DNA of 64,000 bases. It comes from Mytilus californianus. Lineage: Eukaryota. The stretch lies in contig NW_026262723.1 in NCBI RefSeq assembly GCF_021869535.1, positions 88,970,001-89,034,000 of the forward strand, given 5' to 3'. Below, piece after piece: positions 27,230-63,374 of the stretch. The translations under genes and the position numbers were made by a program. The first letter of the stretch is position 1; each line of letters starts with the position of its first letter. The notes below the pieces were generated by a model. That model saw only the letters and a list, made by a program, of their open reading frames with translations, had not been told where the DNA came from and made no database searches.

Positions 27230-27230
<1 letters not shown>

Positions 27231-32968: not shown

Positions 32969-33084
32969 CTGTTAAAAAATGTTAAGTTTAATTGTTCATT
33001 CAAATTTGAGAGAGAATACATGGTACTAAAATTCATTTCCCATAAATTATTGTGACGAAAAGGTTAGAAAAACCCCTGACTCAC

Positions 33085-34351: not shown

Positions 34352-34494
34352 GTGGCTATAATTGGAAGTGGGGAGGATGTAGTGATAACATCAAGTTTGG
34401 AGACGAATTAACATACAAGTTTCTAAAAGGGTTGACATCTGGAAAGAATGAAAATGCTGCAATGCAGCTACAAAACTATGGTGCAGGACGCCAG
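34352..34494 (+). CDS. Wnt8: Wnt8 exon 5 (WKWGGCSDNIKFG...AAMQLQNYGAGRQ)
   Basis: CGACAG| acceptor and CAG|GTATGT donor; 143 nt; WGGCSD motif. Not in the ORF track. Confidence 0.93.
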
Positions 34495-40389: not shown

Positions 40390-41224
40390 AAGAATATTAC
40401 CATAAAAGATTGGATGTGAAATACCCGAACGTATAAGATGTCTGCATGTTGAGTTATATTTACGAATGATGTCCTTATACCGATGATAAAATTTAGTAAA
40501 TGTTTTGACTAGTTTATGATATCGAAAACCCTGGTGTAATAATAATGTATGTAAGGCCTCTGCTCATGTCTATTTTGTACTAATACTATGCGTAAAACGA
40601 CCATTTTAGATTAAAAAAAATGTTAATTTCGACATGTTTATGACATCATAGTGACATCACAAGTGACATTTAGGCTCTAAACTGTCCAGATTATATCAAC
40701 CTGTTCATTTATCAATAAAATTAATATAATTTTGAAAGACTTTTGACTTTGACTTTGATTTTATTATTTTTGCAATCATACGGACCAAATAATGGCTTTT
40801 ATCATACATCCTTCTTTACCGATTGTAAATTTTGAATGAGCCTGGATTAGGATGAAAGGTCATGCTGCATAAAAGGCAGCGCTTACTTTGTCCAGGCATC
40901 CTGTTTCAACCGTTGTGCGTCAAAGCGATTCCCTCAATATGTTATCATGAGATGTGTTTATGGATTTACGAAATATGAAAATCGATAAATTACTGCTTTT
41001 ATTTTTCACTCCTCTTTTGATTAAATGTGGATTCGAATGGCGGGAGTGCATGTATAGCAGGAGACGCTTATCTGGATGCAAATCATCGCTTCTTTTAGAA
41101 ATCTTGCTATTCAATGAAAACCTTGATTTGTAATTTTTAATGGATTTATGAGATTTAAACATCGGTGATCTACTGTTATCTGTAACCACGTCATACAAGT
41201 AATGGTATGTTCAAGACGCTTTCA

Positions 41225-41935
41225 CAGAAGATCCGCCATAAAGATGATGTCCTCTCACTAAATAATTCAAAGTTTGATGATCCTATAGAACTTCAAATAA
41301 AGGTTACCACAGATACAGTTAAACCTTTTTTCATATCTTGACTTACAGCTGGAAATTGAATGTTGGTTGAAAACAAAGAACGAAACTATACGAAAGAAAT
41401 GGAGGATTTCAGTTTACCAGCTTTGAACTTTCCCTGTCTATGTAGCAACATTCAAGCACCACTTGTTTATGGAGTATATATTTCCCGGTTGATACGATAT
41501 TCCAGAGCTTGTGTATTCGATTTTGATTTCTTTGAAAGAGGGTTACTGCTTACAAAAAAGCTTTTGAACCAATGTTTCCAAGTAGTAAATTTAAAGTCAG
41601 CCGTTTGAAGAAAGTTTTAAGGACACAGTCACGGGTTAGTTGACCGTTATGTAATATCTGTGTCACAGAGGACCACGAATGTGTTCCAATTGTCGTAATC
41701 TTGTACTTGCATGAGCAACACGACAAGTGTCACATATAGATCAGTAACTGCTTATCATTCCGGAGCACCTGAGTTCACTTCATGTTTTTGGGATCGGTTC
41801 GTGTTGCTCAATATTTAATTTTCTATGTGGTGTTCATTGGATTTGTTCGTATTGTCGTTTTTGGTTTTTTACCATAACTTGTTTTCCATTGACTTATGAG
41901 TTCTGGTGTCTTTGTATCTTCCGCCTCTTTTTACA
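41225..41935 (+). mobile_element. Decayed Penelope-like RT 3' fragment (family D), duplicated at 46215-46920
   Basis: DDVLSLNN remnant and ORF 41360-41608 (YGVYISRLIRYSRAC...LLTKKLLNQ), homologous to the intact ORF at 61219-61539. Confidence 0.75.
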
Positions 41936-42575
41936 TCAAAACGAACTGAGAATGCATAGAAAGCGATAATATTACTTGTATTTTCTATTTCCTTTTCCAT
42001 TATATAAAAAAAAAAAGAATAACTACGCGCGTTCGTCAATTAATATGTTGTTTGGTCACTTGTAATATGTTCAGTTATTGTTAACATTAGTATTTAGTTT
42101 ATCGGATAAAAATTTCAATAGCTACCTAAGTTGGGTGAGACATTACTATTTGAGAGAACATGAGAGTACAGATAAATGATTGTACGTGTAAAAAGGGTGC
42201 GTTAATAAGTAAAATGCATTGCTGCTATTTACACTGTCCGTGGGCAACCTGAGTTTAACTGAGTGAAAAAGTCAACATTGATAATGACTTTTGTAGCACT
42301 AGATTGAATACAGATTTATTGAGAAGCTTGACGAGAAAAGAAAGGTATAAAGGTATAAATTAAAGTGGTAGTTTTAACTGTCTGTTATAAATAGTAACCA
42401 ATTGATCAACAGGCTGAAAATTCATCAGATGTTATCATTTCGCAATTCAAGTTGTGTTAAGGAAAACCTAAAACGAATAAATATGTAATAAGATCAACAA
42501 ACAAACTAAGGGATAAAATGAAGATGGGTACAGTTTCAAATACCAAGAGTGGTTGATCAGCGAGGTGTTGTGATA

Positions 42576-42631
42576 ATGAATGGAATAAATAGTTCTTGGA
42601 TTATTTTATCTATTTTCTTATTGGCGAGAAG
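42576..42631 (+). CDS. Duplicate candidate first exon (MNGINSSWIILSIFLLAR-R); possible alternative exon 1 of the diverged Wnt8 paralog
   Basis: ATG at 42576; hydrophobic core; donor AG|GTAGGA in phase 2, compatible with the acceptor at 52424/52425; homologous to 47522-47577. Confidence 0.4.
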
Positions 42632-42780
42632 GTAGGAACTATGTTCACTTTCTTTTTATATGTTACTTTTTAAATACTAATGACCTAAAAAGAAAATAGC
42701 ATATAGAAACCAATTGCGAATGAAACTGATTTATAGTACAGTAAACTCTATTTCCTAAGTAATATTATCATCCTTATTGT

Positions 42781-43021
42781 ACTCGCATGAGCAACACGAC
42801 GGGTGCCACATTTGGAGCGGGATCTGCTTAGCCTTCCGGAGCCACTGAGATCACCCTTGGTTTTTAGTGGGATTCGTGTTGCTCAGTCCTTAGTTTTCTA
42901 TGTTGTGTTTTGTGCACTGGTGTTTGTCGTTTTGTCTTTTTCTTTTTTGCCATGGCGTTGTCAGTTCATTTTCGACTTACGAGTTTGAATGTCCCTTTGG
43001 TATCTTTCGCCTCTCTTTTAG
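42781..43021 (+). mobile_element. Family D retroelement 3' tail, inserted only in unit 1
   Basis: Matches 59800-60030 and the reverse complement of 60920-61150; missing from unit 2. Confidence 0.75.
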
Positions 43022-45012
43022 CTGTCACATATATCCAAGCACATTAGATAATTTTTCATTTTGGAAGTGAAATCTTTCAACGTATCAAATTTGAAAAAAA
43101 AACGTCAGGGGATGATCAAATACAAACGTTGAAGAATTAAGGACAGACAACACTATGGACAATAGAATAGAGACCACAATTTCTTTTATTGAATCCGTAT
43201 GAATTTGTAACCCGGATTTGTTTTTATCTCTATCGATTTATGAGTTTCGAACAGCGGTATACTACTGTTGCCTTTATTTATGGACTTCCCCTTTCTGAAT
43301 TTGCCTTGGAGTTCAGTATTTTTGTTATACTTTTTTTTGTTGCATGTCTAGCCTTGAATAGTCAATCATATGGATATTAAGAAAAATATTGTGGCGGCTA
43401 CAGAAAAAAAAATATCCATTATTTTTAATTGGAGAAGTTGTTATTCATGAGACACTAATAATATAAATACTTTATGTTTTACGTCTATTTTGCTATAACC
43501 AATTCTCTGACAGCTAATGGCGGATTTCCAAGACGTCACAAGCCTTTAACTATTTTTTTCCATGCGCATACTTGGTTTTTCCAGTGTAAATTACTATAGA
43601 AACAAATAAGCATCTAACCTCGTTAATTCTTGAACGACGTTATCATAGCTTAACTCAAAATGATGTTTAGAAGTGATGTTTTTATTAATTAAACATGTGT
43701 GCTAAATAATATATCAGTTAATGGCAAAATATGAACGAATACAGACACAGCGACAACTTGGTAATCCTCATTAAACAGGTCATACTGTTATAAACTGTAT
43801 TGATTGATGCATAGAAACACCTTAGCATTTTGTTATGAAACGATTCCAACATTCTTAACCTAGATAATTGTTAAAATGTTTGTTACTATTAAACAAAAGT
43901 AATTCCGACATAATATACTGTCGTTGTCTCATTCTATCATGTCTGTCTCGCATTCAAATTCTTAATAACCTTTGAGCCTTACGGCTCATCGGTGTATTCA
44001 AATACAGTATATACATATGGCATTACTGTTCATCAAACTATCTTGTGTCGGCTCTTTGATTTCTGGTTTAAAGGGTGGTATACACTATACACTTTGAACT
44101 ATGTTATGCAATAGTTTTAACGTTTTAAATTTTTTGATTATGGATCCAAAAGACCGCGAATAGAATAATTAGAAAAGAGATTAAAAAAATTAAAGTAAGT
44201 TATGATTTTTGTTCCTTTATACATACATGTACATTATGTGCGAAAATTATGATTCAAATAAGACAATTAAAAATAATATTCGTTAAGTTTCGCGTTTGGT
44301 TTCATATAATTGTAAAAAATTAAAAATGATTGTACACTTTTTGTAGATATTATGTAACATGTTAAAGAGGCATTAGCTACGAGACAACTGTCATATTCCT
44401 TGCTTGATACAGGAATTTTCCGAAGATTTTTATAGCTAGCTAAACCTCCAACTTGTATGATATTTGTTTATAGTTCCGTTATACTGATATATTTGGTGAG
44501 CAACCAAAAAAACATAATATCAATGTGACAATAATTGGGACCTAGGAGTCAAAACTGTGTAGACATACATCACAGACATACAACACAACTGACCTAAAAA
44601 TTCAAACAAACATACATATACATCTAACAAAGACGCCAACAAAAATGTTTTGTAGTTGATAGCAAATTGACAAAGACGTCGATAAAAAATGTTTGTAATT
44701 GAAAGTACATTCTGTATATAGTATACACTCTCTCGATAGAGTATACATTAAGTGAAATATGAAAACAAGGGTAAATAAAATGGAAACAACACTGTAAAAA
44801 CCTCTTTTGTCCGAATCGCACCTCAGGACCCACCTGCACCAGGACGGCAGAGTCAAAAACCCAATAGCGGGATGCATAAATACCGAGTCACGTCAAAAGC
44901 CATACGATCAAAAGACACATAATAGCACGAAGACAAATAAAGGGAAAATTGTAAAGTAAATAAAAAGATACACAACTTCAGCACCCATAATCTATAACTG
45001 AAGACCATCTTT

Positions 45013-45410: not shown

Positions 45411-46214
45411 ATTAGTTGTGAAGTAGTCACTGAATATTTATCTATTAGGTCTTGGTACTTTCCGATGAACACAGTTGTTTCCCAAAATAATATGTTTCCT
45501 CCAAAAATATTTTACAAAGATGTTAATGTATGTAAAATATCGTTTGGGATAAGGCCTCTTCTGATGTCTATTTTGTCCTAATAACTATGCGTAAAATGGC
45601 CATTTTAGATCAAAGATGTTAATTTCAACATGTTTATGCCATCATAGTGACATCACAAGTGACCTTTAGGCTCTAAACTGTCCAGATTATATCAACCTGT
45701 TCATTTATCAATAAAATTAACATAATTTTGAAAGACTTTTGACTTTGATTTTACTATTTTTGCAATCATACGGACCAAATAATGGCACTTACCATACCTC
45801 CTCCTTTACTGATTGTAAATTTTTAAATGAGCCTGGATTAGGATGAAAGGTCATGCATGCATAAAAGGCAGCGCTTACTTTGTCCAAGAATCCTATTTCA
45901 TCCGTCAAAGCGATTCCCTCAAATATTTTATCATGAGATGTGTTTATGGATTTTTGAAATATGAAAATCAGTAAATTACTGCTTTTATTTTTCACTCCTC
46001 TTTTGACTAAATGTGGATTCGAATGGGGGGAGTGCATGTGTAGCAGGAGACGCTTATCTGGATGCAATTCATCGCTTCTTTTAGAAATCTTGCTATTCAA
46101 CGAAAACCTTGATTTGTATTTTTTTAATGGATTTATGAGATGATTAAACATCGGTTAACTACTGTTGTCTTTAACTAGGTCATACAAGTAATGGTATGTT
46201 AAAGACGTTTTCAC

Positions 46215-46920
46215 AGAAGATCCGCTATATAGATGATGTCCTCTCACTAAATAATTCAAAGTTTGGTGATCCTATAGAACTTGAAATTGACGATACTACA
46301 GATACAGTAAAACCTTTTCATATCTTGACTTACAGCTGGAATTTAAATTGAAAGTAGGTTGAGAACACAAAACAAAACTTGACGAAAGAAAGGGAGGATT
46401 TCAGTTTCCCATTTATGAACTTTCCATGCCTATGTAACAACATTCAAGCACCGACTGTTTATGAAGTAGATATCTCCCGGTTGATACGATATTCCAGAGC
46501 TTGTGTATCATGATTTCCTTGAAAGAGGGTTACTGCTTACAAGAAACCTATTGAATTGATGGTTCCAAGTGGTAAAGTTAAAGTCAGCCGTTCGAAAATT
46601 TTGAGGACGACGTCACGGGTTAGTTGACCGTTATGTTATATCTGTGTCACAGAAGACCACGGATGTGTTCCAATTGTCGTAATTTTGTACTTGCATGAGA
46701 AACACGACAAGTATCACATATAGATCAGTAACTGCTTATCATTCCGGAGCACCTGAGTTCACTTCATGTTTTTGGGATGGGTTCGTGTTGCTCAATATTT
46801 AATTTTCTATGTGGTGTTCATTGGATTTGTTCGTATTGTCGTTTTTGGTTTTTTACCATAACTTGTTTTCCATTGACTTATGAGTTCTGGTTGTCCCCTT
46901 TGTATCTTCCGCCTCTTTTT
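46215..46920 (+). mobile_element. Decayed Penelope-like RT 3' fragment (family D), unit-2 copy
   Basis: CGCTATATAGATGATGTCCTCTCACTAAAT (RYIDDVLSLN) and downstream tail; homologous to 41225-41935. Confidence 0.75.
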
Positions 46921-47521
46921 ACATCAAAACGAACTGAGAATGCATAGAAAGCGATAATATTACTTGTATTTTCTATTTCCTTTTCCATTATATAAAAAAA
47001 AAATAATAACTACGCGCGTTCGTCAATTAATATGTTGTTTGGTCACTTGTAATATGTTCGGTTATTGTTTATATTAAAATTTAGTTTATCGGATAAAAAT
47101 TCAAGAGCTACCTAAGTTGGGTGAGACATTACAATTTGAGTGTACATGAGAGTACAGATAAATGATTGTACGTGAAAAAGGGCTATTCACACTGTCCGAG
47201 GGCAACCTGAGTAAACTACTGGAAAAGTCAACATTGATCATGACTTTTGTAGCATTGGATAGAACGATTTATTGAGAAGCTAGACGAGAAAAGAAAGGTA
47301 TAAATTAAAGTGGTAGTTTTGATTGTCTGTTATATATAGTAACCAATTGATCAACAGGCTGAAAATTTATCAGATGTTATCATTTCGCAATTCAAGTTGT
47401 GTTAAGGAAAACCCAAAACGAACGATTATGTAATAAAGATCATCAAACAAACTAAGAGATAAAATGAAGATGGGTGCAGTTTCAATTACCAAGAGTGGTT
47501 GATCAACGAGGTGTTGTGATA

Positions 47522-47577
47522 ATGAATGGAATAAATAGTTCTTTGATTATTTTATGTATTTTCTTATTAGCCAGAGG
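47522..47577 (+). CDS. Diverged Wnt8 paralog, candidate exon 1 (signal peptide MNGINSSLIILCIFLLAR-G)
   Basis: ATG at 47522; hydrophobic core LIILCIFLL; donor GG|GTAGGC in phase 2 joins 52425 to give ARG-SLNEIL. Nearest compatible leader exon found. Confidence 0.55.
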
Positions 47578-47960
47578 GTAGGCATCATGTTCACTTTCTT
47601 TTTTATATGTTACTTTTTAAGTACTAATGACCTAAAAAAAAAGAAACCAATTGCGATTAAAACTGATTTACAGTGCAGTAAACAATATTCTTCAAAATAT
47701 TGTTAAATCTAGTTCACAAGTCATAGTATACTCTTTAGCTTTCTTATATATCCAAGCAGATTAGATCATTTTTCCGTTTGGACTTAAAGTCTTTCAACGT
47801 ATCAAATTTGAAAAAAAACGTAACATCAAGGGGATAATCAAATTTAAACGTCGAAGAATTCAGGACAGGTATCACCATGGACAAAAGAATAGAAACCACA
47901 ATTTCCTTTATTCAATCCGTATGAGATTCGTTGATTGTCAACATTTCAGCCGTTGACTGT

Positions 47961-49585
47961 TGTTTTTATACGACCGCCAAAAAATTTGTGTGGTCGTATA
48001 TTGGTATGACGTTGGCGTCGTCGTCGTCGTCGTCGTCCGAAGACACATTGGTTTTCGCACTCTATCTTTAGTTTAAGTGAATGGATCTCTATGAAATTTT
48101 ACCACAAGGTTCAATACTACAAAAGGAAGGTTGGGATTGATTTTAAGGGTAAAGGTACTAACAGTTAAGGAATTAGGGGCCAAAAATAAGCATTTTTGTA
48201 ACTTCCAGACATAACTTGTGTGTTAGTGTATGGATCTCTCTGACATTGTACCACAAGGTACCATACCACTAAAGGAAAGGCTGGGATTGATTTTGGGGGT
48301 AATTGCCTCAAAATTTTAGGAATTAGGGGCCAAAAAGGGAAAAAAAAACAAGCATTTTTCTAGTTTCAGGACAATAACTTGTGTGTAAGTGTATGGATCT
48401 TTTTGAAATTGTACTACAAGGTTCAATATCACAAAGGGAAAGCTGGAATTGAGTTTGGGGGTAATTGCCCAAAACGTTTAGGAATAAGGGGCCAAAAGGG
48501 GGCCACAAATAAGCATTTTTCTAGTTTCCAGACAATAACTTGTGTTCAAGTGTATGGATCTCTCTGAAATTGTACTGCAAGGTACCATACCACTACAGGA
48601 AAGGCTGGGATTGATTTTAGGGGTAATTGCCTCAACATTTTAGGAATTAGGGGCCAAAAAGGGGAAAAAAACCAAGCATTTTTCTAGTTTCAGGACAATA
48701 ACTTGTGTGTAAGTGTAAGGATCTTTATGAAATTGTACTACAAGGTTCCATATCACAAAGGGAAAACTGGAATTGAGTTTGGGGGTAATTGCCCAAAACG
48801 TTTAGGAATAAGGGGCCAAAAGGGGGCCAAAAATAAGCATTTTTCTAGTTTCCAGACAATAACTTGTGTTCAAGTGTATGGATCTCTCTGAAATTGTACT
48901 ACAAGGTACTATACCACAAAGGGAAGGCTGGGATTGATTTTAGGGGTAATTGCCTTAAAATTTTAGGAATTAGGGGCCAAAAAGGGGAAAAAAACAAGCA
49001 TTTTTCTAGTTTCAGGACAATAACTTGTGTGTAAGTGTATGGATCTTTATGAAATTGTACAACAAGGTTCCATATCACAAAGGGAAAGCTGGGTTAGAGT
49101 TTGGGGGTAATTGCCTTAAACGTTTAGGAATTTGGGGCCAAAAAGGGGCAAAAAAACAAGCATTTTTCTTGATTCCAGACAATAACTTGTGTTCAAGTGT
49201 ACGGATCTCTCTGAAATAGTACTGCAAGGCACCATACATTGTAACACAAAGGGAAGGCTGGGATTGAGTTTGGGGGTGATGAATCATAAGGGGGTTCAAA
49301 AAATTTGAGGAGGGATTTTCTTTTTTTTTTTCTTTAAAATTTTCCATTTTAATTTGGTTATTTCTGATTTATATATAAAAGCAAATAATAATGATATGGT
49401 TTGAATAGGTAAATTAAATTTTTTTTAAGTTCTTAGACTACATTCATTATGTGTCAAAAACCTATGCTGTGTCAAATATTTAATCACAATCCAAATTCAG
49501 TGATGTATCAAGCTTGAATGTTGTGTCCATACTTGCCCCAACAGTTCAGGGTTCGACCTCTGCGGTCGTATCAAGCTGCGCCCAT
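47961..49585 (+). mobile_element. Helentron-associated (HINE/DINE-1-like) non-autonomous element with an internal ~162-bp tandem array
   Basis: T-rich start; 5' hairpin TATACGACC...GGTCGTATA (47967-48000); (CGT)n at 48015-48037; about 8 monomers; 3' sub-terminal GCGGTCGTAT (49562-49571) is the exact reverse complement of ATACGACCGC (47968-47977). Confidence 0.75.
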
Positions 49586-50520
49586 TTTATTGTTTTTGTT
49601 TTCCTTCTTGTGTTTTTGTTTTTTTTCTTTATCTATTATATTGTTTTAGTGTAAAAATCATTTACACTGTTTCTGTTTAAAGAAATAAAAATCGGCAGAC
49701 CAATTGCACATTTGCTGCAGAAAAAAATTATCCATCAGTAATAATTGAACAAGTTGTTATTTATGATATACCAATAATATAAATATTTTATATTTTTACA
49801 TCTTTGCTTCACCCAATTCTCTGACAGCTGATGAAAGATTTCCAAGACGCCATAAGTCTTAAATTATTTTTTTCCATGCGCGTTTTTAGTTTTTCCAGTG
49901 TAACTAACTAAAGAAATAACTGATCATCTAACCTCGTTAATTCTTGAACGACGTTATCATATTTTAACTCAAAAGATGTTGAGAAATGATGGTTTTTTTT
50001 TTAATTAATTAAAGATGTGTGCTAAATAGTATAACATTTATATATATAATAATATGGTAAAGTATGAATGAATACAGACACAGCGATAACGTGGTAGTCA
50101 TACTGTTATAAAATGTATTGATAGATGCATAGATACATCTTAGCATTTTAGTTATGAAACGATTCCAACATTCTTAACCTAGATAATTGTTTAAATGTTT
50201 GTCACTATTAAACAAAAGTAATTCCGATATAATATACTGTCGTTGTCTCATTCTATCATGTCTATCTCGCTTTCAAATTCTTTATTAACTTTGGAGCCTT
50301 ACGGCTCATCAGTGTATTCAAATACAGTATATACATATGGCATATCTGTTCATCAAACTAAAAGGGGTGGTATACACTCTACACTTTTCACTATGTTATG
50401 TGATAGTAATTACGTTTTAAAATGTTTACCTATGGATCAAAAAGACTGCGAATAGAATTATTAGAAAACAGATAAAAAAAAACATAACGTATGTTATGAT
50501 TTTTGTTCCTTTATGCATGC

Positions 50521-50645
50521 ACCACCTCCGGGTGCGGGAATTTCTCGCTGCGTTGAAGACCCATTGGTGGCCTTCGTTTGTTGTCTGCTCTTTGGTCGGG
50601 GTGTTGTCTCTTTGGCATATTCCCCATTTCCATTCTGAATTTTAT
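50521..50645 (+). mobile_element. Very short 3' tail insertion of the 35983 family (another at ~51124-51229 inside the MITE)
   Basis: Reverse complement of 39997-40115; absent at the homologous site of unit 1 (~44220). Confidence 0.75.
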
Positions 50646-50780
50646 GTACATTTTGTCCGAAAATTATGATCAAATAAGACAATTAGAAATATTATTCGTT
50701 AAGTTTCGCGTTTGGTTTCGTGTAATCGTAAATAAAAAGAATGATTGTACACTATTTGTAGATATTATGTAACACGTGAA

Positions 50781-51559
50781 AGGGGCATTAGCTACGAGAT
50801 ATATTTAAAAAAGTATATTTTTATTTGTTCAATCATTAATGAAAGTGAAACAGTGAAATAATAATTCGCTTCTAGCAGCCATTTGGTTCAATTTTGTCAA
50901 ATCATCGCTGATGAATTATGCATATGCAAGTAAATAAAATTCAACCTCACTGAATCCGTATTCCTCGCCGTATTCATGTGACCTTATTTTAACACCTTAG
51001 CTGGACATGGGTTATGCATGTATTCAGCTATTAAAAGGAAAAAAATGTCACCATTGAAAGTGAAACAAGGATGAACCATTTCGTTGATTGATTCGATCCA
51101 CAAACATTCACTCTTATTCGCATTCTTCTCGCTGCGTAGAAGACCCATTGGTGGCCTTCGGCTGTTGTCTGCTCTTTGGTCGGGTTGTTGTCTCTTTGAC
51201 ATATTCCCCATTTCCATTCTCAATTTTATTATACCTTATACAGGTAAAAACGATGATAAAGATATTTTTTAAACTACAATATGAAATCAAACAGACCAAG
51301 AATATCCAATTGCACGTATTTATATTTATATTTATGTTTATATCTGGTTATATGACCATCGGAGGTCATCTTGATGGTTAATTAGATGACGTCTAGACAA
51401 AAATACATACGAAATGTTGATACATTTTATCGAGTCCATTCATTGTTAATTGTTTATTTAAGACTTTTTGTATTTTGGATATACTTTTTAGTATATTATA
51501 AATCAAAAATGAGAATTTGAGTCAAATCGATGAACATGAATTTGACAGCTAATACCCCT
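50781..51559. mobile_element. Second copy of the TTAA-type MITE, with a nested retro-tail
   Basis: Termini AGGGGCATTAGCT / AGCTAATACCCCT are inverted repeats; TTAA at 51560-51563; colinear with 14281-14975. Confidence 0.75.
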
Positions 51560-52424
51560 TTAAAGTTATATGATAATTTGTAAATGTGTGTATTATCTAT
51601 GTTTGGCACCGCTACTGCTTGCACATCTTTTTGTTTTAAAGCGTCCTTTCTTGGTAGGACTGTTTTTCATCAGTGTTAAATAACCATTCATTGGATAGTG
51701 ACACCTTGTGGGCGCTACTCCTTACAATGACTTCATATTTGGTAAGCAGCTTGACGGTATTAAGTTGAAACGCTTGAGAACTTTTATGATCTTGAACATA
51801 CATACTTCCTGTTATCCGATACTTTGATATTTTTAATATGTTGGGGGAAACCATATTTTGTAGACGTCCAGAAACCACATGTTTGGAAGTTTTTTGCAAT
51901 ATGGTCACTATACCTTGGAATCTAGTACTATGCAAATGTTTTCACAACAGTCCCTTAATAAAATAAAAAAAAAAACACATTTCCATGAAAATTGCAAAGA
52001 TAAGTGGTTTAATTACATAAGTTGGGACGGTAATTTATCAAATGTGCGTAGCAATTTTTCCGCAGTCTATTTTGACTCCATTACAATGTAACATAAAAAG
52101 CAGTGGGGACATTTCGCTACGGTCTTTATCTAATTTCATCAAGAAAGGTTTAACATGTCGGATTGCAAAAATGTAACTCCAATTCTTTAACTTGGGTTCT
52201 AAATAGTCAATGATCTCTGTTCATGTCGACGATTTTAATGCTTTTTCAGTTGTAGTCGATGTACTAACATATTTTACTTTTATAAATGCAAATCTATAAT
52301 AATTCTGTGACAAAAATTATTTTACAATACAATAAACTTTGATTGATTTCTATATGCTTAACGCCCATTTGGAACTAGCATTGATCGTTGTTATAAGTAT
52401 ATATTTTTTTTCTTTTAGCTGCAG

Positions 52425-52524
52425 GTCCCTGAATGAAATTTTAAATAGATCTACAGAAGAAGGACTGGTTTTCAATACCTTTACAGAGAATGTGGATTTC
52501 ATTGATTTTCTCGACCAACATTCG
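52425..52524 (+). CDS. Diverged Wnt8 paralog, exon 2 (SLNEILNRSTEEGLVF...QHS)
   Basis: Same CTGCAG|G acceptor and SLNEIL start as Wnt8 exon 2; donor TCG|GTATGC; 100 nt, phase 2 to 0. Confidence 0.8.
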
Positions 52525-53001
52525 GTATGCATTAACTTCCCTTTATCTGTAAACGAACATCATTTTGCATCTTTTCCGGCATAACTGAACTTTTGTACAT
52601 AAAACATGTTAAATTGTGAAAGTCGGTTGAAAAGAAGATAATTTTGTTGATCAATTATCTTAAAGAAGGGTTTACATGTTCTTGTTCGGTAGTCATCCAT
52701 AGTTATTGATTATGCTGTTCATATAAAGTTCCACATATTAACGTAAAAATGACAGACCATGTGTATGTGTGTGTATGTGTGCATTTTAGTTTCTCGTCAG
52801 TGATGCTCGATTGCAGATATGGTAAATCTGAAAGGACCAACCTGTGAGGTAGAGTAAACACAAGGAAAAGTAAATTAATGTTCATGAATTGCAGAATGCT
52901 AAAGGTAAAGTTGTAAACTTTGTTGTTCGTTTTTTGAAGATTTTATGAAAATACGTATTTTTTTTGTAGTGAGTTTTATAATATTTTTTCCATTTTAACA
53001 G

Positions 53002-53128
53002 GTAAATGAAGAAATCTTACATATTATGACCAATGGAACTTCTATAGCACAAGAGGAGTGCCAATATCAGTTCAAATGGGACACCTGGAATTGTCCAGTA
53101 GATATAGCAATGCTTGACAGAAATGATT
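53002..53128 (+). CDS. Diverged Wnt8 paralog, exon 3 (VNEEIL...AQEECQYQFKWDTWNCP)
   Basis: TTTTAACAG| acceptor and T|GTGAGT donor; 127 nt, the same length as Wnt8 exon 3. Not in the ORF track. Confidence 0.88.
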
Positions 53129-54507
53129 GTGAGTTTTAAAAAAAATGTAAAAAGGGCTTGTGCGTTACGAATCTTACACCATAAAGAGTACTATAAAATA
53201 GATATAGGCTAAAATGAAAAAGGCTAGCCCAATATTTTTGTTAACAGTTTAATGTCACTTTGATTTTGGGCTGCTGTCTCATTGAAAAATACACTTCATT
53301 TTAAACATTTGTTTTATTTGGTTATCTACCTTCCATTGATATATATCAATAGGATCACGTCTTCGAAGAACGCGTGCCATAATAAAAAAAACGGAGCAAA
53401 TTGACATATGAGTCAAATCTGGGTGATGTAATGTTGTTGTTGATGGTTAAAAAATTAGCTGGTCAGTGGTCTTTACTTATTTTTATTTTAATTTATTCAA
53501 CAGCAGATAATAAAACCAAACAAACAAAAAGTTAGAAAATGAGAAGATACCGAGGAAAATGATAACCCCATAATCAAAAGAAAACCAAACTAAAATAAGG
53601 ACAACAGTCTAAGAATTACAGTAAACATCTGAAAATTCGGAAATTTTGTGGGCGAAACACGACTCTGGATTCTTTGAAAGTGTGAATAAAAATGAATGTT
53701 AACCGACTTAAACATATAATGCAAACTGTTAGGACACCTGTCAATTGTTTATGTGCAAATTTCGTTTCTTTTGTTTGGTAACTGTCTCATTGATGTACAA
53801 AATTTATCAGTTTTGAGATGAATTTGCTCACAAAATATTGAAAAATATAATGATTGCTAGGCAAACATTTGTAATGCAAAGTGTAAAGGAATAATGACTA
53901 AGATGAAAACAACATATTATGGAGAAGTGAAATACTGAACGACAATTATCTTTTATACAAAGATAATGGAAGTCGTACATAAAAAGGCAAATTTCTGTAA
54001 AAACTGACCATCTTTTACCCTAGTTTGGCCTGTAATGGACAGCTGTTTCGAAAAGTGCGTTCACAATTAATGATGGGAGTGCGTCATACTCCAGGTATAG
54101 AAAATATTTCAACCATATTCAAATAAATGTCCATGTTTGGCATTGCTTGGGAGTTTTTTTTTTCTGATGTTAACAAATTTTGAATACAAAGAATGATATT
54201 GTCCTTCGTCTATCTATCTACCACTGTCCAGTTTCTTGTCAAGTTAACTCTGTGTATATAAAAGTATCTGTTTATTCCTTTAATAAAAGTTTTATTCTGA
54301 CGGTTCAGGTAACATCTGGAACATTCAAGGGAATGGTGATATCTTTATACCACATGCTTGTAATCATTCAAATAATTGTTACTCCCGAACAAATGTGTCA
54401 TGATCTTGGCCTTATCAATATTTTGAATGATTGATTAACGGATCGATCATTTGTGTTGTTGGCCAGGTTTTGTTAATCTTTGCCTTAAAATACTTTTTTT
54501 ATTACAG

Positions 54508-54630
54508 CCACAAGAGAGGCATCTTTTGTTCAAGCAATAACCGCAGCTGGACTTATGTATGCCGTAACGAAGTATTGTAGGTCAGAGGAACAGACCTTAT
54601 GTTCATGTGATCATACAAAACGGGAACCAA
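54508..54630 (+). CDS. Diverged Wnt8 paralog, exon 4 (TREASFVQAITAAG...YCRSEEQTLCSCD)
   Basis: ATTACAG| acceptor and A|GTAAGT donor; 123 nt, phase 1 to 1. Not in the ORF track. Confidence 0.88.
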
Positions 54631-55437
54631 GTAAGTTTGTTCTTGTGATATTACATGCTTTTTCTTCTACAGTTGTTTTTGAAGTATCATAGTTCGCATT
54701 ATATGCGATGCGAAGCTATCATAAGTTTATCATTGAATTAATAAGCTATTTATTTAAGGCAATATGAAATAGACAACAATAAGAGATACACGCAACAAAA
54801 ACACACGATAAGAAAGGTACGTATTATTTTAAAATAGACTTGAATGTTATGAAAAAAATAGAGATGTAAAGGACCTACATCACAAAGGTAAAAATCCAAA
54901 TTTAAAATGACTAATTTTCAACAAATTCAATAATTATTTACATGAAAACGATACATGTAAGTCCTTTTACAATGACCGAGACTGGTTCTTACAATCCGGT
55001 TAAGATATAACGAGCATGCTTTTACAATTATTAAAAAGCATTATCAACTCTTCAATTCTTTCTATTAATGCTTTTAACAATTGTTTGGATATACTTTTGG
55101 TCCGTTTCGGTTTTATCACCTCTTCAAAGTTTGTATGATGTTTTGGTTCTTCAAATATTTTGACATTTAGCAGCACTGAAGAGACATTAATTGTCGAAAT
55201 GCACTTTGTGTGCAGTTACATTGGTACCTTTTATGTTATATTATGTATAGTTGTATAAACCGGTTTACAAATAATCTTTTATAAAAAATTATTTTGAAGT
55301 TTTGTCAAATCTTAATTTAAACATAGTTCACAAATTGTTTTATTATAAGTTTGATTTCACACACAAAGCAACCAAACTGTATTTCATGTTCTCACAATAA
55401 AGCTTCTATTTTGAAAAAAAAACATATATGTATACAG

Positions 55438-55583
55438 GTCAAAATTCAGGAATGGTTTGGGGAGGCTGTAGTGATAATATAAAATTTGGGATAAAGTTTA
55501 CACAGCAGTTACTCAACAAGATGGACCCTGGAAACGATTCAAATGCAGCAATGCGACGTCATAATTATAAAGTCGGACTAAGA
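55438..55583 (+). CDS. Diverged Wnt8 paralog, exon 5 (VWGGCSDNIKFG...AAMRRHNYKVGLR)
   Basis: TATACAG| acceptor and AGA|GTAAGT donor; 146 nt, phase 1 to 0. Confidence 0.88.
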
Positions 55584-55958
55584 GTAAGTGAGACAATATA
55601 CATATTTAGTCAATGCCACAATTGAAAGCGGTTATATTTATTTTCGTGTAATATATTTAAATGTATCAAAGTTAAACGCTGAAAAGCAATTAAATCCCAA
55701 AAATTAAACAAACAAGCAAAATCATGTATACCTCGTTCAAAAAAAGTTAAAAACGCAAAAGTCAACAAAAAAATTCTGTGTATGAGTTTTTTAATCTTGT
55801 TGAGAAGTGATTAAACATTAACACAATGAACCTCGAACAAGATAAAGATACAGTGGTACTAGCTCATTATTTAACAAAAATTAAGTATTAGTATACCTTG
55901 TGGCAACATTTTTTCCCTCATCTCACTATAACTTTAATTTTACCATCATGTTTAACAG

Positions 55959-56252
55959 GCAGTCTTGTGGAGTGCAAAATTGGATTGTGTATGCCCTGGT
56001 ATTAATAATAACTGTGCAACCATGAGAGTATGCTGGAAACAAGTTTCCATCTTCCGTGATATTGGAACTTTCTTAAAAGAACTATATACACATGCACAAT
56101 TTGTTAAATATCTGGATAAACAGCTTTGGTTAGAATACTATGGTGGAACTCGTGAATTGATTTTAAAGAAAGAACTAGCATACTTGCAGATGTCACCAGA
56201 TAGTATCTACGTACCACCAATCTTCAAAAACAAAGGTAAGAATGGCGGATAA
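55959..56252 (+). CDS. Diverged Wnt8 paralog, exon 6, truncated and lacking the acylation Ser (281-aa product, or a pseudogene)
   Basis: TTTAACAG| acceptor; CVCPGINNNCATMRVCW replaces CKCHGLSGDCSIRTCW; FRDIGTFLK and LAYLQMSPD align to Wnt8; stop at 56250-56252. Confidence 0.82.
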   Translation, partial: AVLWSAKLDCVCPGINNNCATMRVCWKQVSIFRDIGTFLKELYTHAQFVKYLDKQLWLEYYGGTRELILKKELAYLQMSPDSIYVPPIFKNKGKNGG

Positions 56253-56899
56253 TATATTATTAGTAACTCCCAAAATCCTCTTGAAATCACGTGTCTCTTT
56301 TTTTAATCTCCTTTCCATGATTGTAAACAGTTTAAATTAATTCAGACCGAAAAGGTATAGGACGCTTTACTATTGAGGAAACAAAATATACCACTTTTTG
56401 TAAGAGTAAAGTCATTGGCTCCCTTTTAACTTTGCCACATCTCCCCTACAATACCCGCAAGCAGCCATCTCAAAATTTTCAATATATCATATAATAACCG
56501 GTCGAAATCTGGAATCCAATAAATTGTTTGTGTTTCCTATCAAGGTAGAGTTAACTGGTAATTCTGATAATGTTTAAAAATAAAAGTAAAACTACTATAC
56601 CGATTTCAGTGTGCACAACACATATTTCTGGTATGACCGTCAACTCTTAAAACAAACAAAAATGGGAACCCAAATATATTAATAGTTTCTATGAGCATTA
56701 AATCCAAATTGGGGGAATTCAAGAAAGTAGAAATTTTATTTTTGATATATTTATAAAATCTATAAGCTGTAAATGGGGAGATGTGGCAGGAACCATTATC
56801 TTGCCCATGAAATTGGAAAAAGTAAAAATCGTCCATACTTTAAATCATGTTGATTCATGAAGAGATAAAAAGAGGAATCCGGAACAATCGTAGATCTGT

Positions 56900-57420
56900 T
56901 TAATGTTCCTTTTGGAATATCAACCAACTTGAAAATAAAACTAGATCTTCATTGACTTTGCTGGATATCCAAATTACTCTATAGTTCTAACAAAAAAGTT
57001 ATAATGCTAAGCCAGATATAATATTTGTATGAGAAAGGAAAAATCTTTGTAAACCCCTCTGATTCAAAAACATTTTTTTTAAACTGACATCATCAAGATG
57101 CTTGATGTACTTATTGACACCATGTTTGTTATGTTTGAAGGGCGTGTTTTTCAACAAGCAATATGAATCCTATGTTACCCAAGTATTGCAAACTTGTTCT
57201 TTTATTCTAATGAAGCAAACTTGAGCTTCTGTAGAAAAATAAAAAGTAGCCAGCATTAACCATAACGCCATTTTCCGCTATACAGATGATGTTCTTTCAC
57301 TTAATAAATCAAATAACTTTGTAACTATATCAATTGCATTACAACGATTGATATCTTAATTTTCATCTAGAAATTTACAATGAGAGTCGGTTGATAACCA
57401 CTATTTTCTTGATAGAGGGC
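56900..57420 (+). mobile_element. Highly decayed Penelope-like RT fragment
   Basis: Frameshifted IIKMLDVLIDTMFVMFEGRVFQQ and FRYTDDVLSLN remnants. Confidence 0.6.
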
Positions 57421-59508
57421 TATTAAAAATAATGAATTAAACCACCTCGGATTTTTTGTCACGGCCATAGCTAGTTTAAGTTTTATTGATATGTCATTAA
57501 CGTACAACCTAGCAATTCCATAAAAAGAGAGCGTCTTATAACGAGTGGACAACAAAGACAACGTATAAAACGTCCACAATAGAAAACGTCTGTTTTTATA
57601 TAATTGGCCGTCTTCCTAATCATGGCATATATAGAACAGATTTGAGTTTACATTGCCATTTTGGTTTGTACTGGTTGTCTATCTAGTTTATTATTCTTCA
57701 ATTACAGTAATGTTAAAGACATATCAGAATCTTGTAAAGATGTTGAGGATTGTTAAGTTGACTGATCAGCACTGGTAAGTTCACCGTGTGTGTTATATTC
57801 ATATATAAATATAGTTCTGATACAAGGATGATAAATTCACATACGTTTGTCAAAAGAAGATACCAATGGAACTCATTCTAATAAGTCGAAGACAAACAGA
57901 CACCGTCATGGAAAAATTTACAAAAGTCTACAAAACACAAGAAAACTAAAAAATGAGCGACACGAACCCCACTAGAATCTCATCTTGTTGAATTTTTTCA
58001 TAGTTTTCATTTTCACTTATACTGACGACAAACATGTATAAAACCCTTGAAATGCATATTTATTTGATTAAGGGTTGCTGCGTTTAATAAACGTATTGAA
58101 TTAAGGATTCTAAATTGTTACGTTGAAGTCATCCCTTTGAAATTTTCACCGACTTTAACAAAATAGCCATAGGCAAGTTCCAATTGTGGTAGCACTAGTC
58201 TCTTTTTCCCGATTGTTACATAAACGAGTTTTAACTTGCAGGGAACAACACGAAAGGGACACTTTTTGACCAGGGACTGCTTACTCTTGATCATCTTAGT
58301 TTTCCCTAGTTTTGTTTTAAAGAGGTTCTGTTTCTTTTGCTTTAGTTTTGAATGTTGTATGTTATGCGATTTTATTTTTTAATGTCTGTGCTGTCCCTTC
58401 TGGTATAGGTTTAGTATTGTCTGGAAAATCATATGTTCAACCTTTCATATTAGGTCAGGTTGTTGGGTTGGATAATTTACATGACCAATGGCTAATGAAT
58501 TTGGTGATATCTTGGTTTCAGACAAGAATCATTCACAGTTCAGTTACAAGATTTCTGTTAGCTCTCTCACCAGATATGAAAAATCAATGTATTTTACAGG
58601 TGTAACATGGATGACGTATGTAACAAGAGGATCAGGAGTACCAAAGTTTACCTCTATTTTCGGTGAAGTGGAGTTTTTCAATTTAGGCTTTCCGTTAATT
58701 TTTTTCAAGGGTGTTGTTTATCTTTTCGATGTTTTTACTCTGGTCATGGTGTAGTCAGTTTTTCGTCAATTTTGGATTTTTGGTTGCCACTTGGTACCTT
58801 TTCCATTTTATTTTCTGATTTTAAAAGTAAAAAATACCACCGTAAAAAAGTCTTCTGTATAAAAATCAGGAGATGAGGTATGACTGCCAATGAGACAACA
58901 ATCCACCAAAGTGTATTCGTTTTTGGATTTCGATAAATGATGCTTCATCAAGGCTTAGTTCATTTCCCTTTTTCCTATCATACCACAACATTTAACTATT
59001 AATTGGTATAACACAAAGTTGTATGAGAAACACCTGCATCAAAATGTATCAGTCAGTGTTAAATTCAGACTTAGTTTGTATTAATGAAATGCTCAGTATC
59101 ATGAGAGACAAAATGTTTCCCGTTCTTACACCAGATTTATCTTAATACTGGGAAAAATACTTACAAATGACTACAACGCAAAAATACGGGCCACAGATGA
59201 GAAAAACAAATTCAAGCTTTTCCTGAATTACCCTGCATTATTCTATTTACATTTTATCGAAGAAAATATAACCGAACGCCTTGTATTCAATCATGTTTCC
59301 CTGGTATCTTTGGTGAGTTTTTGCATATGAATATGACATTGTGGTATATTTTTGATTTTCTATTTCATTGTTTCGATTTTTTACTTTCTATGGTATATGA
59401 TGTTTTAATTTGTATATGCAACACTCCGTTTAAAGTAAACAATGCATTATGAGAAAGTAGTTTCCTTACTTTGTCAATGTATTCCAACAATCAACTTTAT
59501 ATTTGCAG

Positions 59509-59590
59509 GATATTCGACCCGGCTTTGGTATTAGGCCCACTAATAGTATCTAATAATACCCGCAATGCATACTTTCTCACACGACTCCAG
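59509..59590 (+). other. Isolated exon resembling Wnt8 exon 2 (possible third paralog or relic)
   Basis: ATTTGCAG| acceptor and CAG|GTAAGT donor; phase 2 to 0 reading IFDPALVLGPLIVSNNTRNAYFLTRLQ, 10 of 27 identities to Wnt8 exon 2 with one 3-codon gap (manual alignment). Confidence 0.45.
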
Positions 59591-59673
59591 GTAAGTATGA
59601 ATCAAAGTAAAGCCATAAGATAAATTAATTTAGTTATGATAAAATTGGACTTTAGTAAGATGAAAGATGAAGT

Positions 59674-60030
59674 ATGAGTTGGTTGACCGTTATGGAATAA
59701 CCGTTTCACAGATGATATCGGATATATTCCTTATGTCGTTACTACAATCCCCTTCCCTTTCACGAATATGACCTACCGAATTAGACTATTTACAGGGTTT
59801 GTAATAATATGAACAACACATGTGGAGCAGGATCTGCTTACCCTTCCGGAGCACCTGAGATTACCCCCAGTTTTTGTAGGGGTTTGTGTTGCTTAGTCTT
59901 TAGTTTTCTATGTTGCGTCTTGTGTACTATAATTTGTCTGTTTGTCTTTTTTTTTGTTAGCGATGGCGTTGTCAGTTTATTTTCGATCTATGAATTTGAC
60001 TGTCCCTCTGGTATCTTTCGCCCCTCTTTT
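59674..60030 (+). mobile_element. Family D retroelement 3' fragment
   Basis: Reverse-complement match to 60920-61284. Confidence 0.8.
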
Positions 60031-60919
60031 AGTATTTGTAACATTGTTTCTACTGGCTGTAAAAAAAGAAACTGAATGAGCTCCAATAAAGTGGACCACT
60101 ACAACAGTTTAATGTGTTGTAAATAGGGACTATATACCATTTGTTAAAAACATAGGCCAACATGCACAGTTCGATCTGCTCTAAAGAGTAATTTTTTTAT
60201 TTTTTAGTTTGTAACTCCAAAACATTTCGTGAATACAACTTGATGATTCACATGTTGTAAGGATTATAAATTGATTTGGTTTCGATATTATGGTTTATAA
60301 TTAAACTAGGACCCGCACCATTCTTTTTGAGAAGCCATTTAAGGGAAACTTTACAGTTTAGTGGATAAATGTAAAGGTTTAGTAAATTAACAGCCTAATC
60401 GTTTCAAAAGTTAGTTAGTTGTTTATGACTCATGTTAAGTTTGCTATTTTGACGTATTGGGAAACATCTATATTTGGTTATTCTCTCAAACAGGGTTTTG
60501 GAAACTTTATTGTTAGCATCCTGGAAATGTTTTCTAGTTATTGGTATGTCATAAAACAATCCGATTTAATTTTGATGACTTTCATATTATAATCACTTTG
60601 AAATATTGAAATAAACATTAGGACAAAGAATTTATGCATTTCCATCTTAGTACAAAGATTCATACAAGAAGAACTCAGAAAAAGATTTGTTAAATGTCTG
60701 ATATTTTTAATGGAGTATTTTAATGTCTTTGTTGAATACAGTTTACAAGTTTTCGAACAGATGATTTGAATTCCAATGTATCTGATGTTTGGAATGCTCC
60801 TGTAAGACTTTTTTTATTTCTCATGTATGGCACAAACAGATCAAATGAATGGAGGTATTTACAAGATTTTGTCTTGTTTAATTTGAGCTTCCCCTTTATA
60901 AATAGCCCAATGTGTTACT

Positions 60920-61737
60920 AAAGAGGGACGAAAGATATCAGAGGGACAGTCAAACTCATAGATCGAAAACAAACTGACAACGCCATGGCCAAAAATAAAA
61001 AGACAAACAGACAAATAATATTACAGATGACACAACATAGAAAACCAAAGACTAAGCAACACGAACCCCACCAAAAACTGGGGGTGATCTCAGGTGCTCC
61101 AGAAGGGTAAGCAGATCCTGCTCCACATGTGGCACCCGTCGTGTTACTTATGTAATTACAAATCCGGTAAATAGTCTAATTCGGTAAGTCACATTCGTGA
61201 AAAGGGAGGGTATTGTAGTTACGACATAAGGAACATATCCGATATCATCTGTGAAACGGTTATTCCATAACGGTCAACCAACTCGTGATGGCGTCCGTAA
61301 AATTTACGAAGGGATGACTTCAACTTCACCATTTGGAACTCTTGGTTTAATAGCTTCCTTGTGAGCAGCAATCCTCTATCAAGGAAATCATGATAGGAAA
61401 CACAAGCCCGGGAATATCGTATCAATTGGGAGATATATACTCCGTATGCAGGCGCTGCTGGAATGTTGATACAGAGAAATGGAAAGTTCACAATTGGGAA
61501 GCTGAAATCATCTCTTTTGTCGTAAAGTTTTGTTTTCAACAGACCCTCATTGTCAATTTCTAGATGTAAGTCAAGATATGAGGCAGACTTAACTGTATCT
61601 GTAGTATCCTTTATCTCTAGTTCGATGGGATAGATTCGTTCAACATAGTCACCAAATTTTGTATTATTTAGTGAGAGAACATCATCTATATAGCGGAACG
61701 TAGAGTTAAAGGATATTGCTAACTTCTTATCTTTCTA
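60920..61737 (-). mobile_element. Young 5'-truncated Penelope-like RT retroelement (family D)
   Basis: Open frame FRYIDDVLSLNN...SYLDL...KTKLYDKRDDFSFPIVNFPFL...PAYGVYISQLIRYSRAC...KFYGRHHELVDRY with an intact YIDD catalytic motif, followed by the 3' tail. Confidence 0.85.
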
Positions 61738-63374
61738 AATTATGAGACTATATACGTATAGACTATATACGTATTTTTTCGTGTTAATAAAATGGACACT
61801 GTGGAACCTTAAAAGATCATGACAATCTTAATGCCACGGCCATTATTCAGCATATGTAGACAAATTATCGTGAATAAATAACAGCTAATGATGTTCAAGT
61901 ATTGATTATTAGAGATCTGGTATCGGATCGTAAATAGGAAATATTATCGGATGTTGTCACTTTTATGTGATCAGCTTCTGCTTCAGTTTCAAATATAGCA
62001 TTCAAACTATGAATAGACACGTACATCTCGAGCTATTTATACCTTTGGGACAATTTTACAGAATTTCAAAATTGTCTAACTTTGTCATTTCTGGCAACAT
62101 GAATCAAGGAGTGGTTCCGATTTTTGGTCATTGACACCTCCAACAGTTTCATAGTCAGATGCATGATTTCGTAGAACTTTTATTTACATATTAGGCATGT
62201 GCATCTCCTACATAATGTTAAATAATGTAACCCGACCATTTGACGTATAAATAACTCTTGGTAACTGATAGCAAAAAATGCAGATGCGTACACATTAAAA
62301 ATTTCGAGACCCCAATCAGCTCGCATCTTGGCAAATGCAGATATGAGGACACTTATGTTTCGGCTAGGTAAGCCACCTCAGGTTTCTCACTTGGGTGTTT
62401 GTTATCATTACGTTTGACGTATAAACCGGTCTAGGTGTCACACACCATGGCATGAATCATACGCCAACGGTCAGACAGAGCTTAAAATATAGACTACAAA
62501 TAAACAAATAAAAGTAAAATATACATGAAGCCGTTTTGGCAGCCCTAGTAGAAAAATCCTGCTGTGGTCAATTTTCATCAAAACAACATCGAATAAAAAA
62601 ATTCATTTACTTCGCTTATTCGATACTGCAGATATGAGGACCGTTATTTTTCTGCTAGAAAAACCCATCGAGGCCTATTATCTTGGGTGAACATGTTTAC
62701 GTATATATACAATAAGTATAAACTTGATATTTCACACACTATGAAAGTAATAAAACTATTACATTATAAAACGCATTTTTCCTTTATGATTAAACAGGAT
62801 TATGTGTTTTCTTAAATCGTACTGTATTTGTTCTTTATCTTAGTAGGCAGTTTTATGACTAATACCACAAAAGATTTACTGCAAATTTTAGTTTTTTTTT
62901 TTATTTGTTTCGCCATTGAATAAAACACCACATTTTTTACAGATTTTAAAGTTGAATTGTATGTAATTGTCTCAACTTGCTGATCACATTTCTTGACAAC
63001 AGTTACATTTTCATGCATGATTATTTTTGTCGTTATAACGAATACAAAACATTATGATGACCGTGATAGTTTCGTTTACAGAACAATAAACTGAGATCAC
63101 TAACGCATTCATACATCCACTTCATAATACCACAAAAAGTTTCTTTCCATCTTGTAATGACTGAACAGTGATCTTACTTATAGATATTAAAAGCATCATC
63201 AAATTAACTGCTCAGTTAAATTATATTCTGTAAAAATTGTTATAATTTTTCAAAATAACACCGAAACCAAAACACATTGGTATATTGCTTTAAGGTGAGT
63301 TAAATTCTTCAAGGTTTTTGCCAATTTACGTCCTGATTGAAATGGAGACTTTTAAAAATATAACTTTTATTTAA

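Follow-up and report, generated by a model that had tools for sequence, protein, structure and literature searches.

Introduction

All analysed Wnts except Drosophila WntD are mono-palmitoleoylated on a serine of the thumb, and this palmitoleate is required for binding to Wntless and fills the groove of the Frizzled cysteine-rich domain (CRD) (PMC10112924). The exception, WntD, is a Wnt of the Wnt8 group and is given as not lipid-modified in the passages of the same article that cite Ching et al. (2008). In this study we analyse a locus of the mussel Mytilus californianus in which a Wnt8 derivative likewise has no acyl-acceptor serine. The window, namely the whole stretch of DNA that was analysed, comprises 64,000 nucleotides (NCBI RefSeq assembly GCF_021869535.1, contig NW_026262723.1, positions 88,970,001 to 89,034,000 of the forward strand), and the coordinates below are those of the window. 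A preliminary description of its segment 47522-56252 had presented a Wnt8-derived tandem paralog next to its intact parent, possibly a non-acylated Wnt in the manner of WntD.

Our analysis leads to another gene model. With a probability that we put at roughly 0.75, the segment 47522-56235 makes up the 5' half of a gene with 12 exons in M. californianus, whose single mRNA and single reading frame are put together by splicing from two tandem Wnt8 copies. Judged by its sequence, the predicted double-Wnt protein is a non-acylated Wnt derivative and not a stand-alone analogue of WntD.

Results

Gene model and transcripts

The + strand of the window holds two Wnt-like genes in head-to-tail order, the canonical Wnt8 (the parent) and then the double-Wnt gene. 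For the latter, two RefSeq models of 600 amino acids each, XP_052068651.1 (isoform X1) and XP_052068652.1 (isoform X2), map exactly on 12 exons by exact splice mapping. Both are named 'protein Wnt-2-like', which is misleading because the gene is Wnt8-derived. The locus that codes for X2 (L003, from assembly GCA_021869535.1) agrees with the window over 32576-64000 at 100% identity. The exons and the elements within them are as follows.

42576-42631, + strand: exon e1a, alternative first exon (isoform X1, XP_052068651.1), with the signal peptide MNGINSSWIILSIFLLARS; exact splice mapping; within the 2.2-kb duplicated segment
47522-47577, + strand: exon e1b, first exon (isoform X2, XP_052068652.1), with the signal peptide MNGINSSLIILCIFLLARG; donor GG/gt (the slash marks the splice point), phase 2
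52419-52524, + strand: exon 2 (CRSLNEILNRSTEEGLVFNTFTENVDFIDFLDQHS), the homologue of exon 2 in Wnt8; few stranded reads; start at 52419 according to RefSeq
53002-53128, + strand: exon 3 of module A (...EECQYQFKWDTWNCP...); Pfam wnt; RNA junction from 53128 to 54508
54508-54630, + strand: exon 4 of module A; Pfam wnt; RNA junctions at both ends
55438-55583, + strand: exon 5 of module A (...WGGCSDNIKFG...); Pfam wnt; RNA junctions from 54630 to 55438 and from 55583 to 55959
55959-56235, + strand: exon 6 of module A, with thumb, helix and linker of the Wnt N-terminal domain; donor AAAG/gtaag; RNA junction from 56235 to 57708
55986-56036, + strand: thumb hairpin CVCPGINNNCATMRVCW, from the translation, HMMER and a 24-sequence alignment
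56236-56252, + strand: start of intron 6 with an in-frame TAA at 56250-56252; not covered as exon by RNA
57708-57774, + strand: exon 7 (VMLKTYQNLVKMLRIVKLTDQHW), originally exon 1 in the second Wnt8 copy; phase-2 end; highest hydropathy 1.17
59509-59590, + strand: exon 8 (IFDPALVLGPLIVSNNTRNAYFLTRLQ), former exon 2 of the second copy; matched by the consensus of the reads' loose end at 57775 and by the splice map
Window-equivalent 64439-64571, 70225-70347, 70686-70840 and 71084-71491 (L003 31864-38916), + strand: exons 9-12 of module B, beyond the window; splice map

The protein is laid out as a signal peptide, module A (residues 1-278), a 50-residue linker and module B (272 residues), and Pfam recognises two wnt stretches in the whole chain of 600 residues with 377 bits. 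Upstream, a 2.2-kb segment is duplicated with 89% identity (40552-42746 and 45550-47683). Both copies contain a first exon that encodes a signal peptide, one used by RefSeq isoform X1 and the other by X2, which gives the gene two alternative promoters or first exons. This gene model is present in RefSeq, but no paper describing the double-Wnt gene was found in the literature on Mytilus Wnt8 paralogs, bivalve Wnt8 tandem duplication or two-Wnt-domain proteins.

The interval 52300-58299 was compared with three Logan contig sets and one stranded raw-read run, and words of exon 6 were found in RNA-type runs of M. californianus. Four GT..AG junctions were recovered (53128 to 54508, 54630 to 55438, 55583 to 55959 and, after a shift of +2, 56235 to 57708), which provides the spliced transcripts that the preliminary description had called for, here from exon 3 to exon 7. 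The junction from 56235 to 57708 is carried by 9 stranded raw reads (7 starts) and by contigs in two other runs, and none of the four runs has any depth at 56300-56499. Since this interval is empty and the splice at 56235 is used, the stop at 56250 lies in an intron. The gene does not end at 56252, as had been described: exon 6 is spliced between 56235 and 56236, and the mRNA runs on into the second Wnt8 unit. Reads leaving exon 7 go on with exon 8 sequence, and one contig of 1408 nucleotides passes through exons 3, 4, 5, 6 and 7, continues for 213 nucleotides (the length of exons 8 and 9 together) and then enters a paralogous exon 4, which differs from that of module A at 4 of 45 positions and is that of module B.

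Exon 6 is covered over 55959-56233 by contigs of two other studies and by raw reads of a third, with no variant at the Asn codons of the thumb. An assembly error behind the thumb motif, which the preliminary description had named as a possible objection, was rejected, as the independent RNA data agree with these Asn codons. The only variants listed come from reads of run X21 and are three non-synonymous substitutions: G>A at 56016 (Ala to Thr), G>A at 56079 (Glu to Lys) and T>A at 56224 (Phe to Tyr).

Some further observations concern the transcripts and introns of this gene. The variants at 56079 and 56224 give residues that are found in M. trossulus. A contig of run X2 enters at 52932, 70 nucleotides upstream of exon 3, with more than 255 nucleotides foreign to the window, and may reflect an alternative upstream exon or a chimera; its 30-nucleotide loose end at 52932 does not occur within the window. 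Intron 4 holds a patch of 35 nucleotides (55169-55204) where RNA depth rises up to 75 and where every run shows loose ends at either side. The patch resembles a repeat piece expressed from elsewhere and not a part of the double-Wnt gene.

Module A and its thumb

The thumb of module A reads CVCPGINNNC, compared with CKCHGxSGxC in Wnts. Its four Cys are kept and one residue (+3 nucleotides) is inserted; Asn stands opposite the acylated Ser and Pro opposite the His in the HMMER comparison with human WNT7A and WNT8A, with which the 24-sequence alignment agrees. The loss of the His and of the Porcupine-target Ser, the central observation of the preliminary description, is thus confirmed, and with Asn at the acylation position module A presents neither Ser nor Thr there. 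Against the Pfam wnt family (PF00110; gathering cut-off 20.3 bits, profile length 305), four of the five stop-free pieces, which cover exons 3-6, pass with 26-40 bits over profile positions 16-232 of 305, and the piece holding exon 2 gives no match to this family. Splice sites and phases are those of the upstream Wnt8 exon by exon (2, 0, 1, 1, 0). Compared with the same gene, exon 2 is longer by 9 or 15 nucleotides depending on the acceptor, exon 3 is unchanged, exon 4 is shorter by 3, exon 5 longer by 3, and the thumb in exon 6 longer by 3, so the earlier statement that splice structure is conserved and that all indels are multiples of three holds.

Module A starts with a good signal peptide (peak 9-residue hydropathy 3.2-3.8; 3.78 for e1b), carries the N-terminal extension of bivalve type, and consists of the Wnt N-terminal domain and linker with exactly 10 N-terminal-domain Cys. 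The 22-24 Cys, the C-terminal domain and the CxCxFxWCC index finger of a complete Wnt are not found in it, and the reading as a stand-alone full-length WntD-like Wnt gives way to a two-module chain. Module A ends where the parent Wnt8 reads NIKGTKGRQC. The donor of exon 6, AAAG/GTAAG, is derived from the former codons AAA GGT ACA (KG-T/K), i.e. it lies inside ancestral coding sequence, and it is conserved in three species. We considered that a further exon close by might supply module A with a C-terminal domain, and rejected this because no remnant of that domain was found in the 7.7 kb downstream: tblastn at word size 2, a search for segments rich in Cys and blastn with the Wnt8 3' coding sequence all gave nothing in 56200-64000 on either strand.

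Linker and module B

Exon 7 ends in phase 2, as do all first exons of the Wnt8 family here, and exon 8 (...NNTRNAYFLTR) resembles exon 2 (...NYTRNPDLFTR). By these two features, the linker consists of the second copy's own former exons 1-2. The former signal peptide in exon 7 is now polar, with a peak hydropathy of 1.17 compared with 3.2-3.8 in module A.

In module B the thumb reads CTCQG--KGC, with two residues deleted, the Ser among them, and 27 residues with 6 Cys, i.e. the index finger CNCKFRWCCKVKCDKC, have been lost in frame. Its C-terminal domain is thus truncated. It keeps 16 Cys, fewer than the full Wnt set, and cysteine losses are even-numbered in both modules (10 kept in A, 16 in B). 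Its best matches among solved structures are WNT8A (1e-56) and XWnt8 (1e-53), with other Wnts at 1e-38. Because both thumbs are without His and Ser, the loss of these residues probably predates the A/B duplication, as far as the two sequences tell.

Origin and orthologs

Exon 6 taken alone is ambiguous with regard to the subfamily, in that its matches to the solved structures of Wnt7a, Wnt8a and Wnt5a score alike; the tree and module B decided. In the tree (29 sequences, a partial sampling with six named subfamilies only: Wnt5, 6, 7, 8, 10 and 16) modules A and B are sisters (96/92) and together sister to canonical mytilid Wnt8 within the mytilid Wnt8 group (100/99), which lies in a Wnt8 clade supported at 95/93. 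Both modules appear in this phylogeny as Wnt8-derived. The parent gene is found upstream:

25353-35599, + strand: canonical Wnt8 (parent), with exons at about 25353-25426, 30237-30327, 31268-31394, 33642-33767, 34352-34494 and 35102-35599

The tree and this intact gene bear out the earlier claim of a Wnt8-derived tandem paralog next to its parent. The parent has the thumb CKCHGLSGDC, a complete C-terminal domain, 22 Cys without exon 1 and the finger CNCKFRWCC, and is 96% identical in amino acids to the M. trossulus 'Wnt-8a-like' (P0080). Bivalve Wnt8 proteins, i.e. the parent, this M. trossulus protein and the Saccostrea 'Wnt-8b-like' (P0058), share with the double gene the exon-intron structure, the phases, the extension at the N-terminus (SLNEIL...) and the 10 Cys of the N-terminal domain; their identity to both modules is 45-58%. 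Unlike the double gene, they keep CKCHGLSGDC, 22 Cys (without exon 1) and CNCKFRWCC, at a ratio of nonsynonymous to synonymous substitution rates (dN/dS) of 0.06.

A profile-free search with exon 6 gave one close relative, M. trossulus XP_063447148.1 (598 amino acids), with two matched stretches and the same architecture as the M. californianus protein; used as a query in turn, it led to the two M. californianus models. All ten splice junctions are conserved between the two species, and the frame of 598-600 codons is open in both at a dS of about 0.35-0.4; the stop at 56250 is not position-conserved in M. trossulus. The models of M. coruscus use the junction from exon 6 to exon 7 too, and a module B fragment occurs in M. 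galloprovincialis (P0079). The loss of the Ser is common to M. trossulus (CVCPGINKSC) and M. coruscus, and by this sharing is to be regarded as old. The annotation of M. coruscus splits the locus into a 155-amino-acid product and two 'WNT8' products of 433 and 453 amino acids.

Selection on the modules

Selection was estimated as dN/dS by the Nei-Gojobori method with codon bootstraps. Between M. californianus and M. trossulus, dN/dS is 0.057 for Wnt8, and 0.26 (confidence interval 0.15-0.42) for exons 3-6 of module A, which are 80% identical in amino acids. Over three pairs, module B gives 0.19-0.25 (0.23) and the linker 0.44-0.63, the confidence interval of the latter including 1. No bootstrap reaches 1 for module A or module B, and by these estimates both modules are under purifying selection in Mytilus.

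Predicted fold

In the AlphaFold2 (AF2) model of module A, which has a predicted local distance difference test score (pLDDT) of 75 and a predicted template modelling score (pTM) of 0.75, the helical core and the thumb hairpin are kept. By Foldseek the model matches Wnt3, XWnt8, WNT8A and the WntD N-terminal domain + linker crystal structure 4KRR at E-values of 1e-15 to 1e-9, and 4F0A and 7KC4 are among the structure matches of the modules. Module A is accordingly modelled with the fold of a Wnt N-terminal domain. In the full-length AF2 model both modules fold, with a pTM of 0.44 and a linker pLDDT below 50.

Other features of the locus

A minus-strand gene is called in intron 3 of Wnt8 (about 32576-33238; L003 1-663; L001 3729-5109), with 246 amino acids in M. 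californianus, 247 in M. trossulus and no Pfam hit. Intron 1 of the double-Wnt gene contains a tandem array at 48175-49277, with a unit of 161/324 bp in about 3-7 copies of 83-92% identity. Cys-/Phe-rich open frames (...SAYPSGAPEITPSF...CCLVFSFLCCVLC...) occur at 41748-41966, 42868-43044, 46732-46944 and 59785-60072 (+) and at 60921-61175 (-). They are scattered in introns, are present at this locus in M. trossulus and M. coruscus too, and probably represent an interspersed repeat family of mussels.

Discussion

Several other accounts of the locus have to be weighed against a 12-exon double-Wnt gene. As the frame stays open between 47522 and 56249 and then meets a stop, the segment might be taken as a stand-alone six-exon gene ending at the TAA of 56250-56252, the product of which would be a short, secreted, non-acylated Wnt with an N-terminal domain only. 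Such a product could fold alone, as the N-terminal domain and linker do in WntD 4KRR, and a minor intron-retaining isoform would be possible at the depth seen. The zero depth behind the donor in four runs and the use of the donor 56235 in 9 raw reads and two contigs make this account very improbable, the more so as the donor is conserved in three species, the stop is not, and the RefSeq models of two species read on. It is also quite unlikely that we deal with a transcribed relic, that is, with decaying Wnt8 pseudogenes joined by read-through transcription and giving no functional protein. This would fit the loss of every receptor-binding hallmark, a dN/dS several times that of Wnt8, the frameshifts of module A in M. 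coruscus and an expression that looks low; however, it is hard to reconcile with dN/dS values of 0.26 and 0.23 and no bootstrap at 1, with the frame open in two species, with indels that are all in frame, with cysteines lost in even numbers only, and with the conservation of all ten splice junctions.

M. coruscus brings in another possibility. In its assembly (GCA_011752425.2, L002 about 8483, 9968-9986 and 10472) module A has an insertion of 1 nucleotide in exon 4, one of 11 with stops in exon 5 and one of 1 in exon 6, besides a Cys-to-Tyr change in the exon 6 thumb, and module B is intact. The preliminary description had named disabling mutations in relatives, together with dN/dS near 1, as evidence against itself; these three frame-breaking indels are in part such evidence. 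A three-taxon split (exon 1 being left out of the M. coruscus figures) gives branch dN/dS values for module A of about 1.4 in M. coruscus and 0.12 in M. californianus, and in 99.6% of bootstraps dN of the M. coruscus branch is the higher one; on the M. coruscus branch module B is still constrained (0.15). Assembly errors could account for two of the three indels, which lie in short homopolymers; the insertion of 11 nucleotides and the shift in rate speak for genuine decay. One could therefore hold that module B is the functional unit and that module A mainly carries promoter and signal peptide, which would explain the decay of module A in M. coruscus. Since exon 1 has a phase-2 end like exon 7, a hypothetical isoform joining exon 1 to exon 8 would keep the frame and give a secreted, stand-alone module B, whose own exon 1 has no hydrophobic core. 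We consider this unlikely, as the M. californianus branch and the comparison with M. trossulus both show module A under constraint, and as the reads and contigs observed over 52300-58299 join exon 6 to exon 7.

The reading as a functional double-Wnt gene has its own weak sides. From the indels and from the contrast between about 1.4 and 0.15, module A appears to be dispensable in at least one lineage or haplotype, and both modules evolve 4-5 times faster than Wnt8 in terms of dN/dS. RNA depth is low, the Logan contigs alone are no proof of a single molecule, and translation of the full 600-amino-acid frame is something we infer. A pTM of 0.44 with a linker pLDDT below 50 allows no conclusion on the arrangement of the modules, and searches with length and word limits found no A- or B-type copy outside Mytilus.

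If the double-Wnt protein is made, established Wnt biochemistry would predict that neither module is a Porcupine substrate for palmitoleoylation. As neither has an acyl Ser, the protein would be without the lipid-dependent Wntless route and without site 1 of the Frizzled CRD. The index finger of XWnt8 is said, from the work of Janda and colleagues in 2012, to carry the Frizzled site-2 contacts. Site 2 (the index finger) also seems to be absent from both modules, and canonical two-finger binding of the Frizzled CRD would then not be expected. Export would most likely follow the ordinary secretory pathway via the signal peptide of module A, and action would most likely proceed through the conserved helical surfaces of the N-terminal domains, possibly in a bivalent way; the protein would then bind or modulate partners in the Wnt pathway apart from the Frizzled CRD, and would not be a canonical ligand. 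The earlier idea of a freely diffusible antagonist is speculative. We tentatively propose that Mytilus has a secreted, lipid-free 'tandem Wnt', made of two Wnt8 N-terminal-domain cores with both Frizzled-CRD fingers removed, which might be a Porcupine- and Wntless-independent modulator acting via co-receptors, extracellular Wnt binders or bivalent trapping.

The cysteine framework, the reading frame and the splice sites have been kept under selection across Mytilus species in spite of the loss of the acyl site and the deletion of the index finger. Provided that it is secreted and active, the protein would reveal the Wnt functions that the N-terminal domain holds by itself, and would offer a natural soluble, lipid-free Wnt scaffold. 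The locus is also a clear example of fusion by exonisation, in which the upstream copy gained a donor within its coding sequence and the downstream copy lost its signal peptide.

Thumbs without Ser are not unique to mussels in the databases, since predicted cases are found in Glandiceps and Styela. The protein XP_077998206.1 of the hemichordate Glandiceps talaboti (P0040; 692 amino acids) has two units as well, both with the thumb CRCHGFKGC and thus without Ser or Thr at the acylation position. It belongs to an unrelated lineage and subfamily, and its units, unlike those of Mytilus, hardly differ from each other and retain the C-terminal domain, so the model may be an annotation merge. The Wnt5-like protein of Styela clava (P0067), again from an unrelated lineage, has the thumb CECHGLKDSC with no Ser or Thr at this position. 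Another predicted Wnt (P0052), with the thumb CKCHGMCGSC, likewise has neither residue there. In contrast to the predicted Glandiceps and Styela cases, the Mytilus gene is backed by reads across a junction and contains an internal signal peptide that has decayed.

With Drosophila WntD the mussel gene shares the derivation from Wnt8 and a thumb without the acylated Ser, and independence of Porcupine and Wntless would therefore be expected in both. The model of module A superposes on the N-terminal domain and linker of WntD in 4KRR with a template modelling score of 0.75 by target. However, WntD is a single full-length Wnt with a C-terminal domain, whereas the Mytilus protein has two modules, one without the C-terminal domain and one without the index finger; and because both modules nest within mytilid Wnt8, its origin is independent of WntD. 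WntD anchors the question of what a Wnt fold is still capable of when palmitoleate, Wntless and Frizzled site 1 are not available to it, and the mussel gene may be regarded as a second, independent and more radical natural experiment on the same question.

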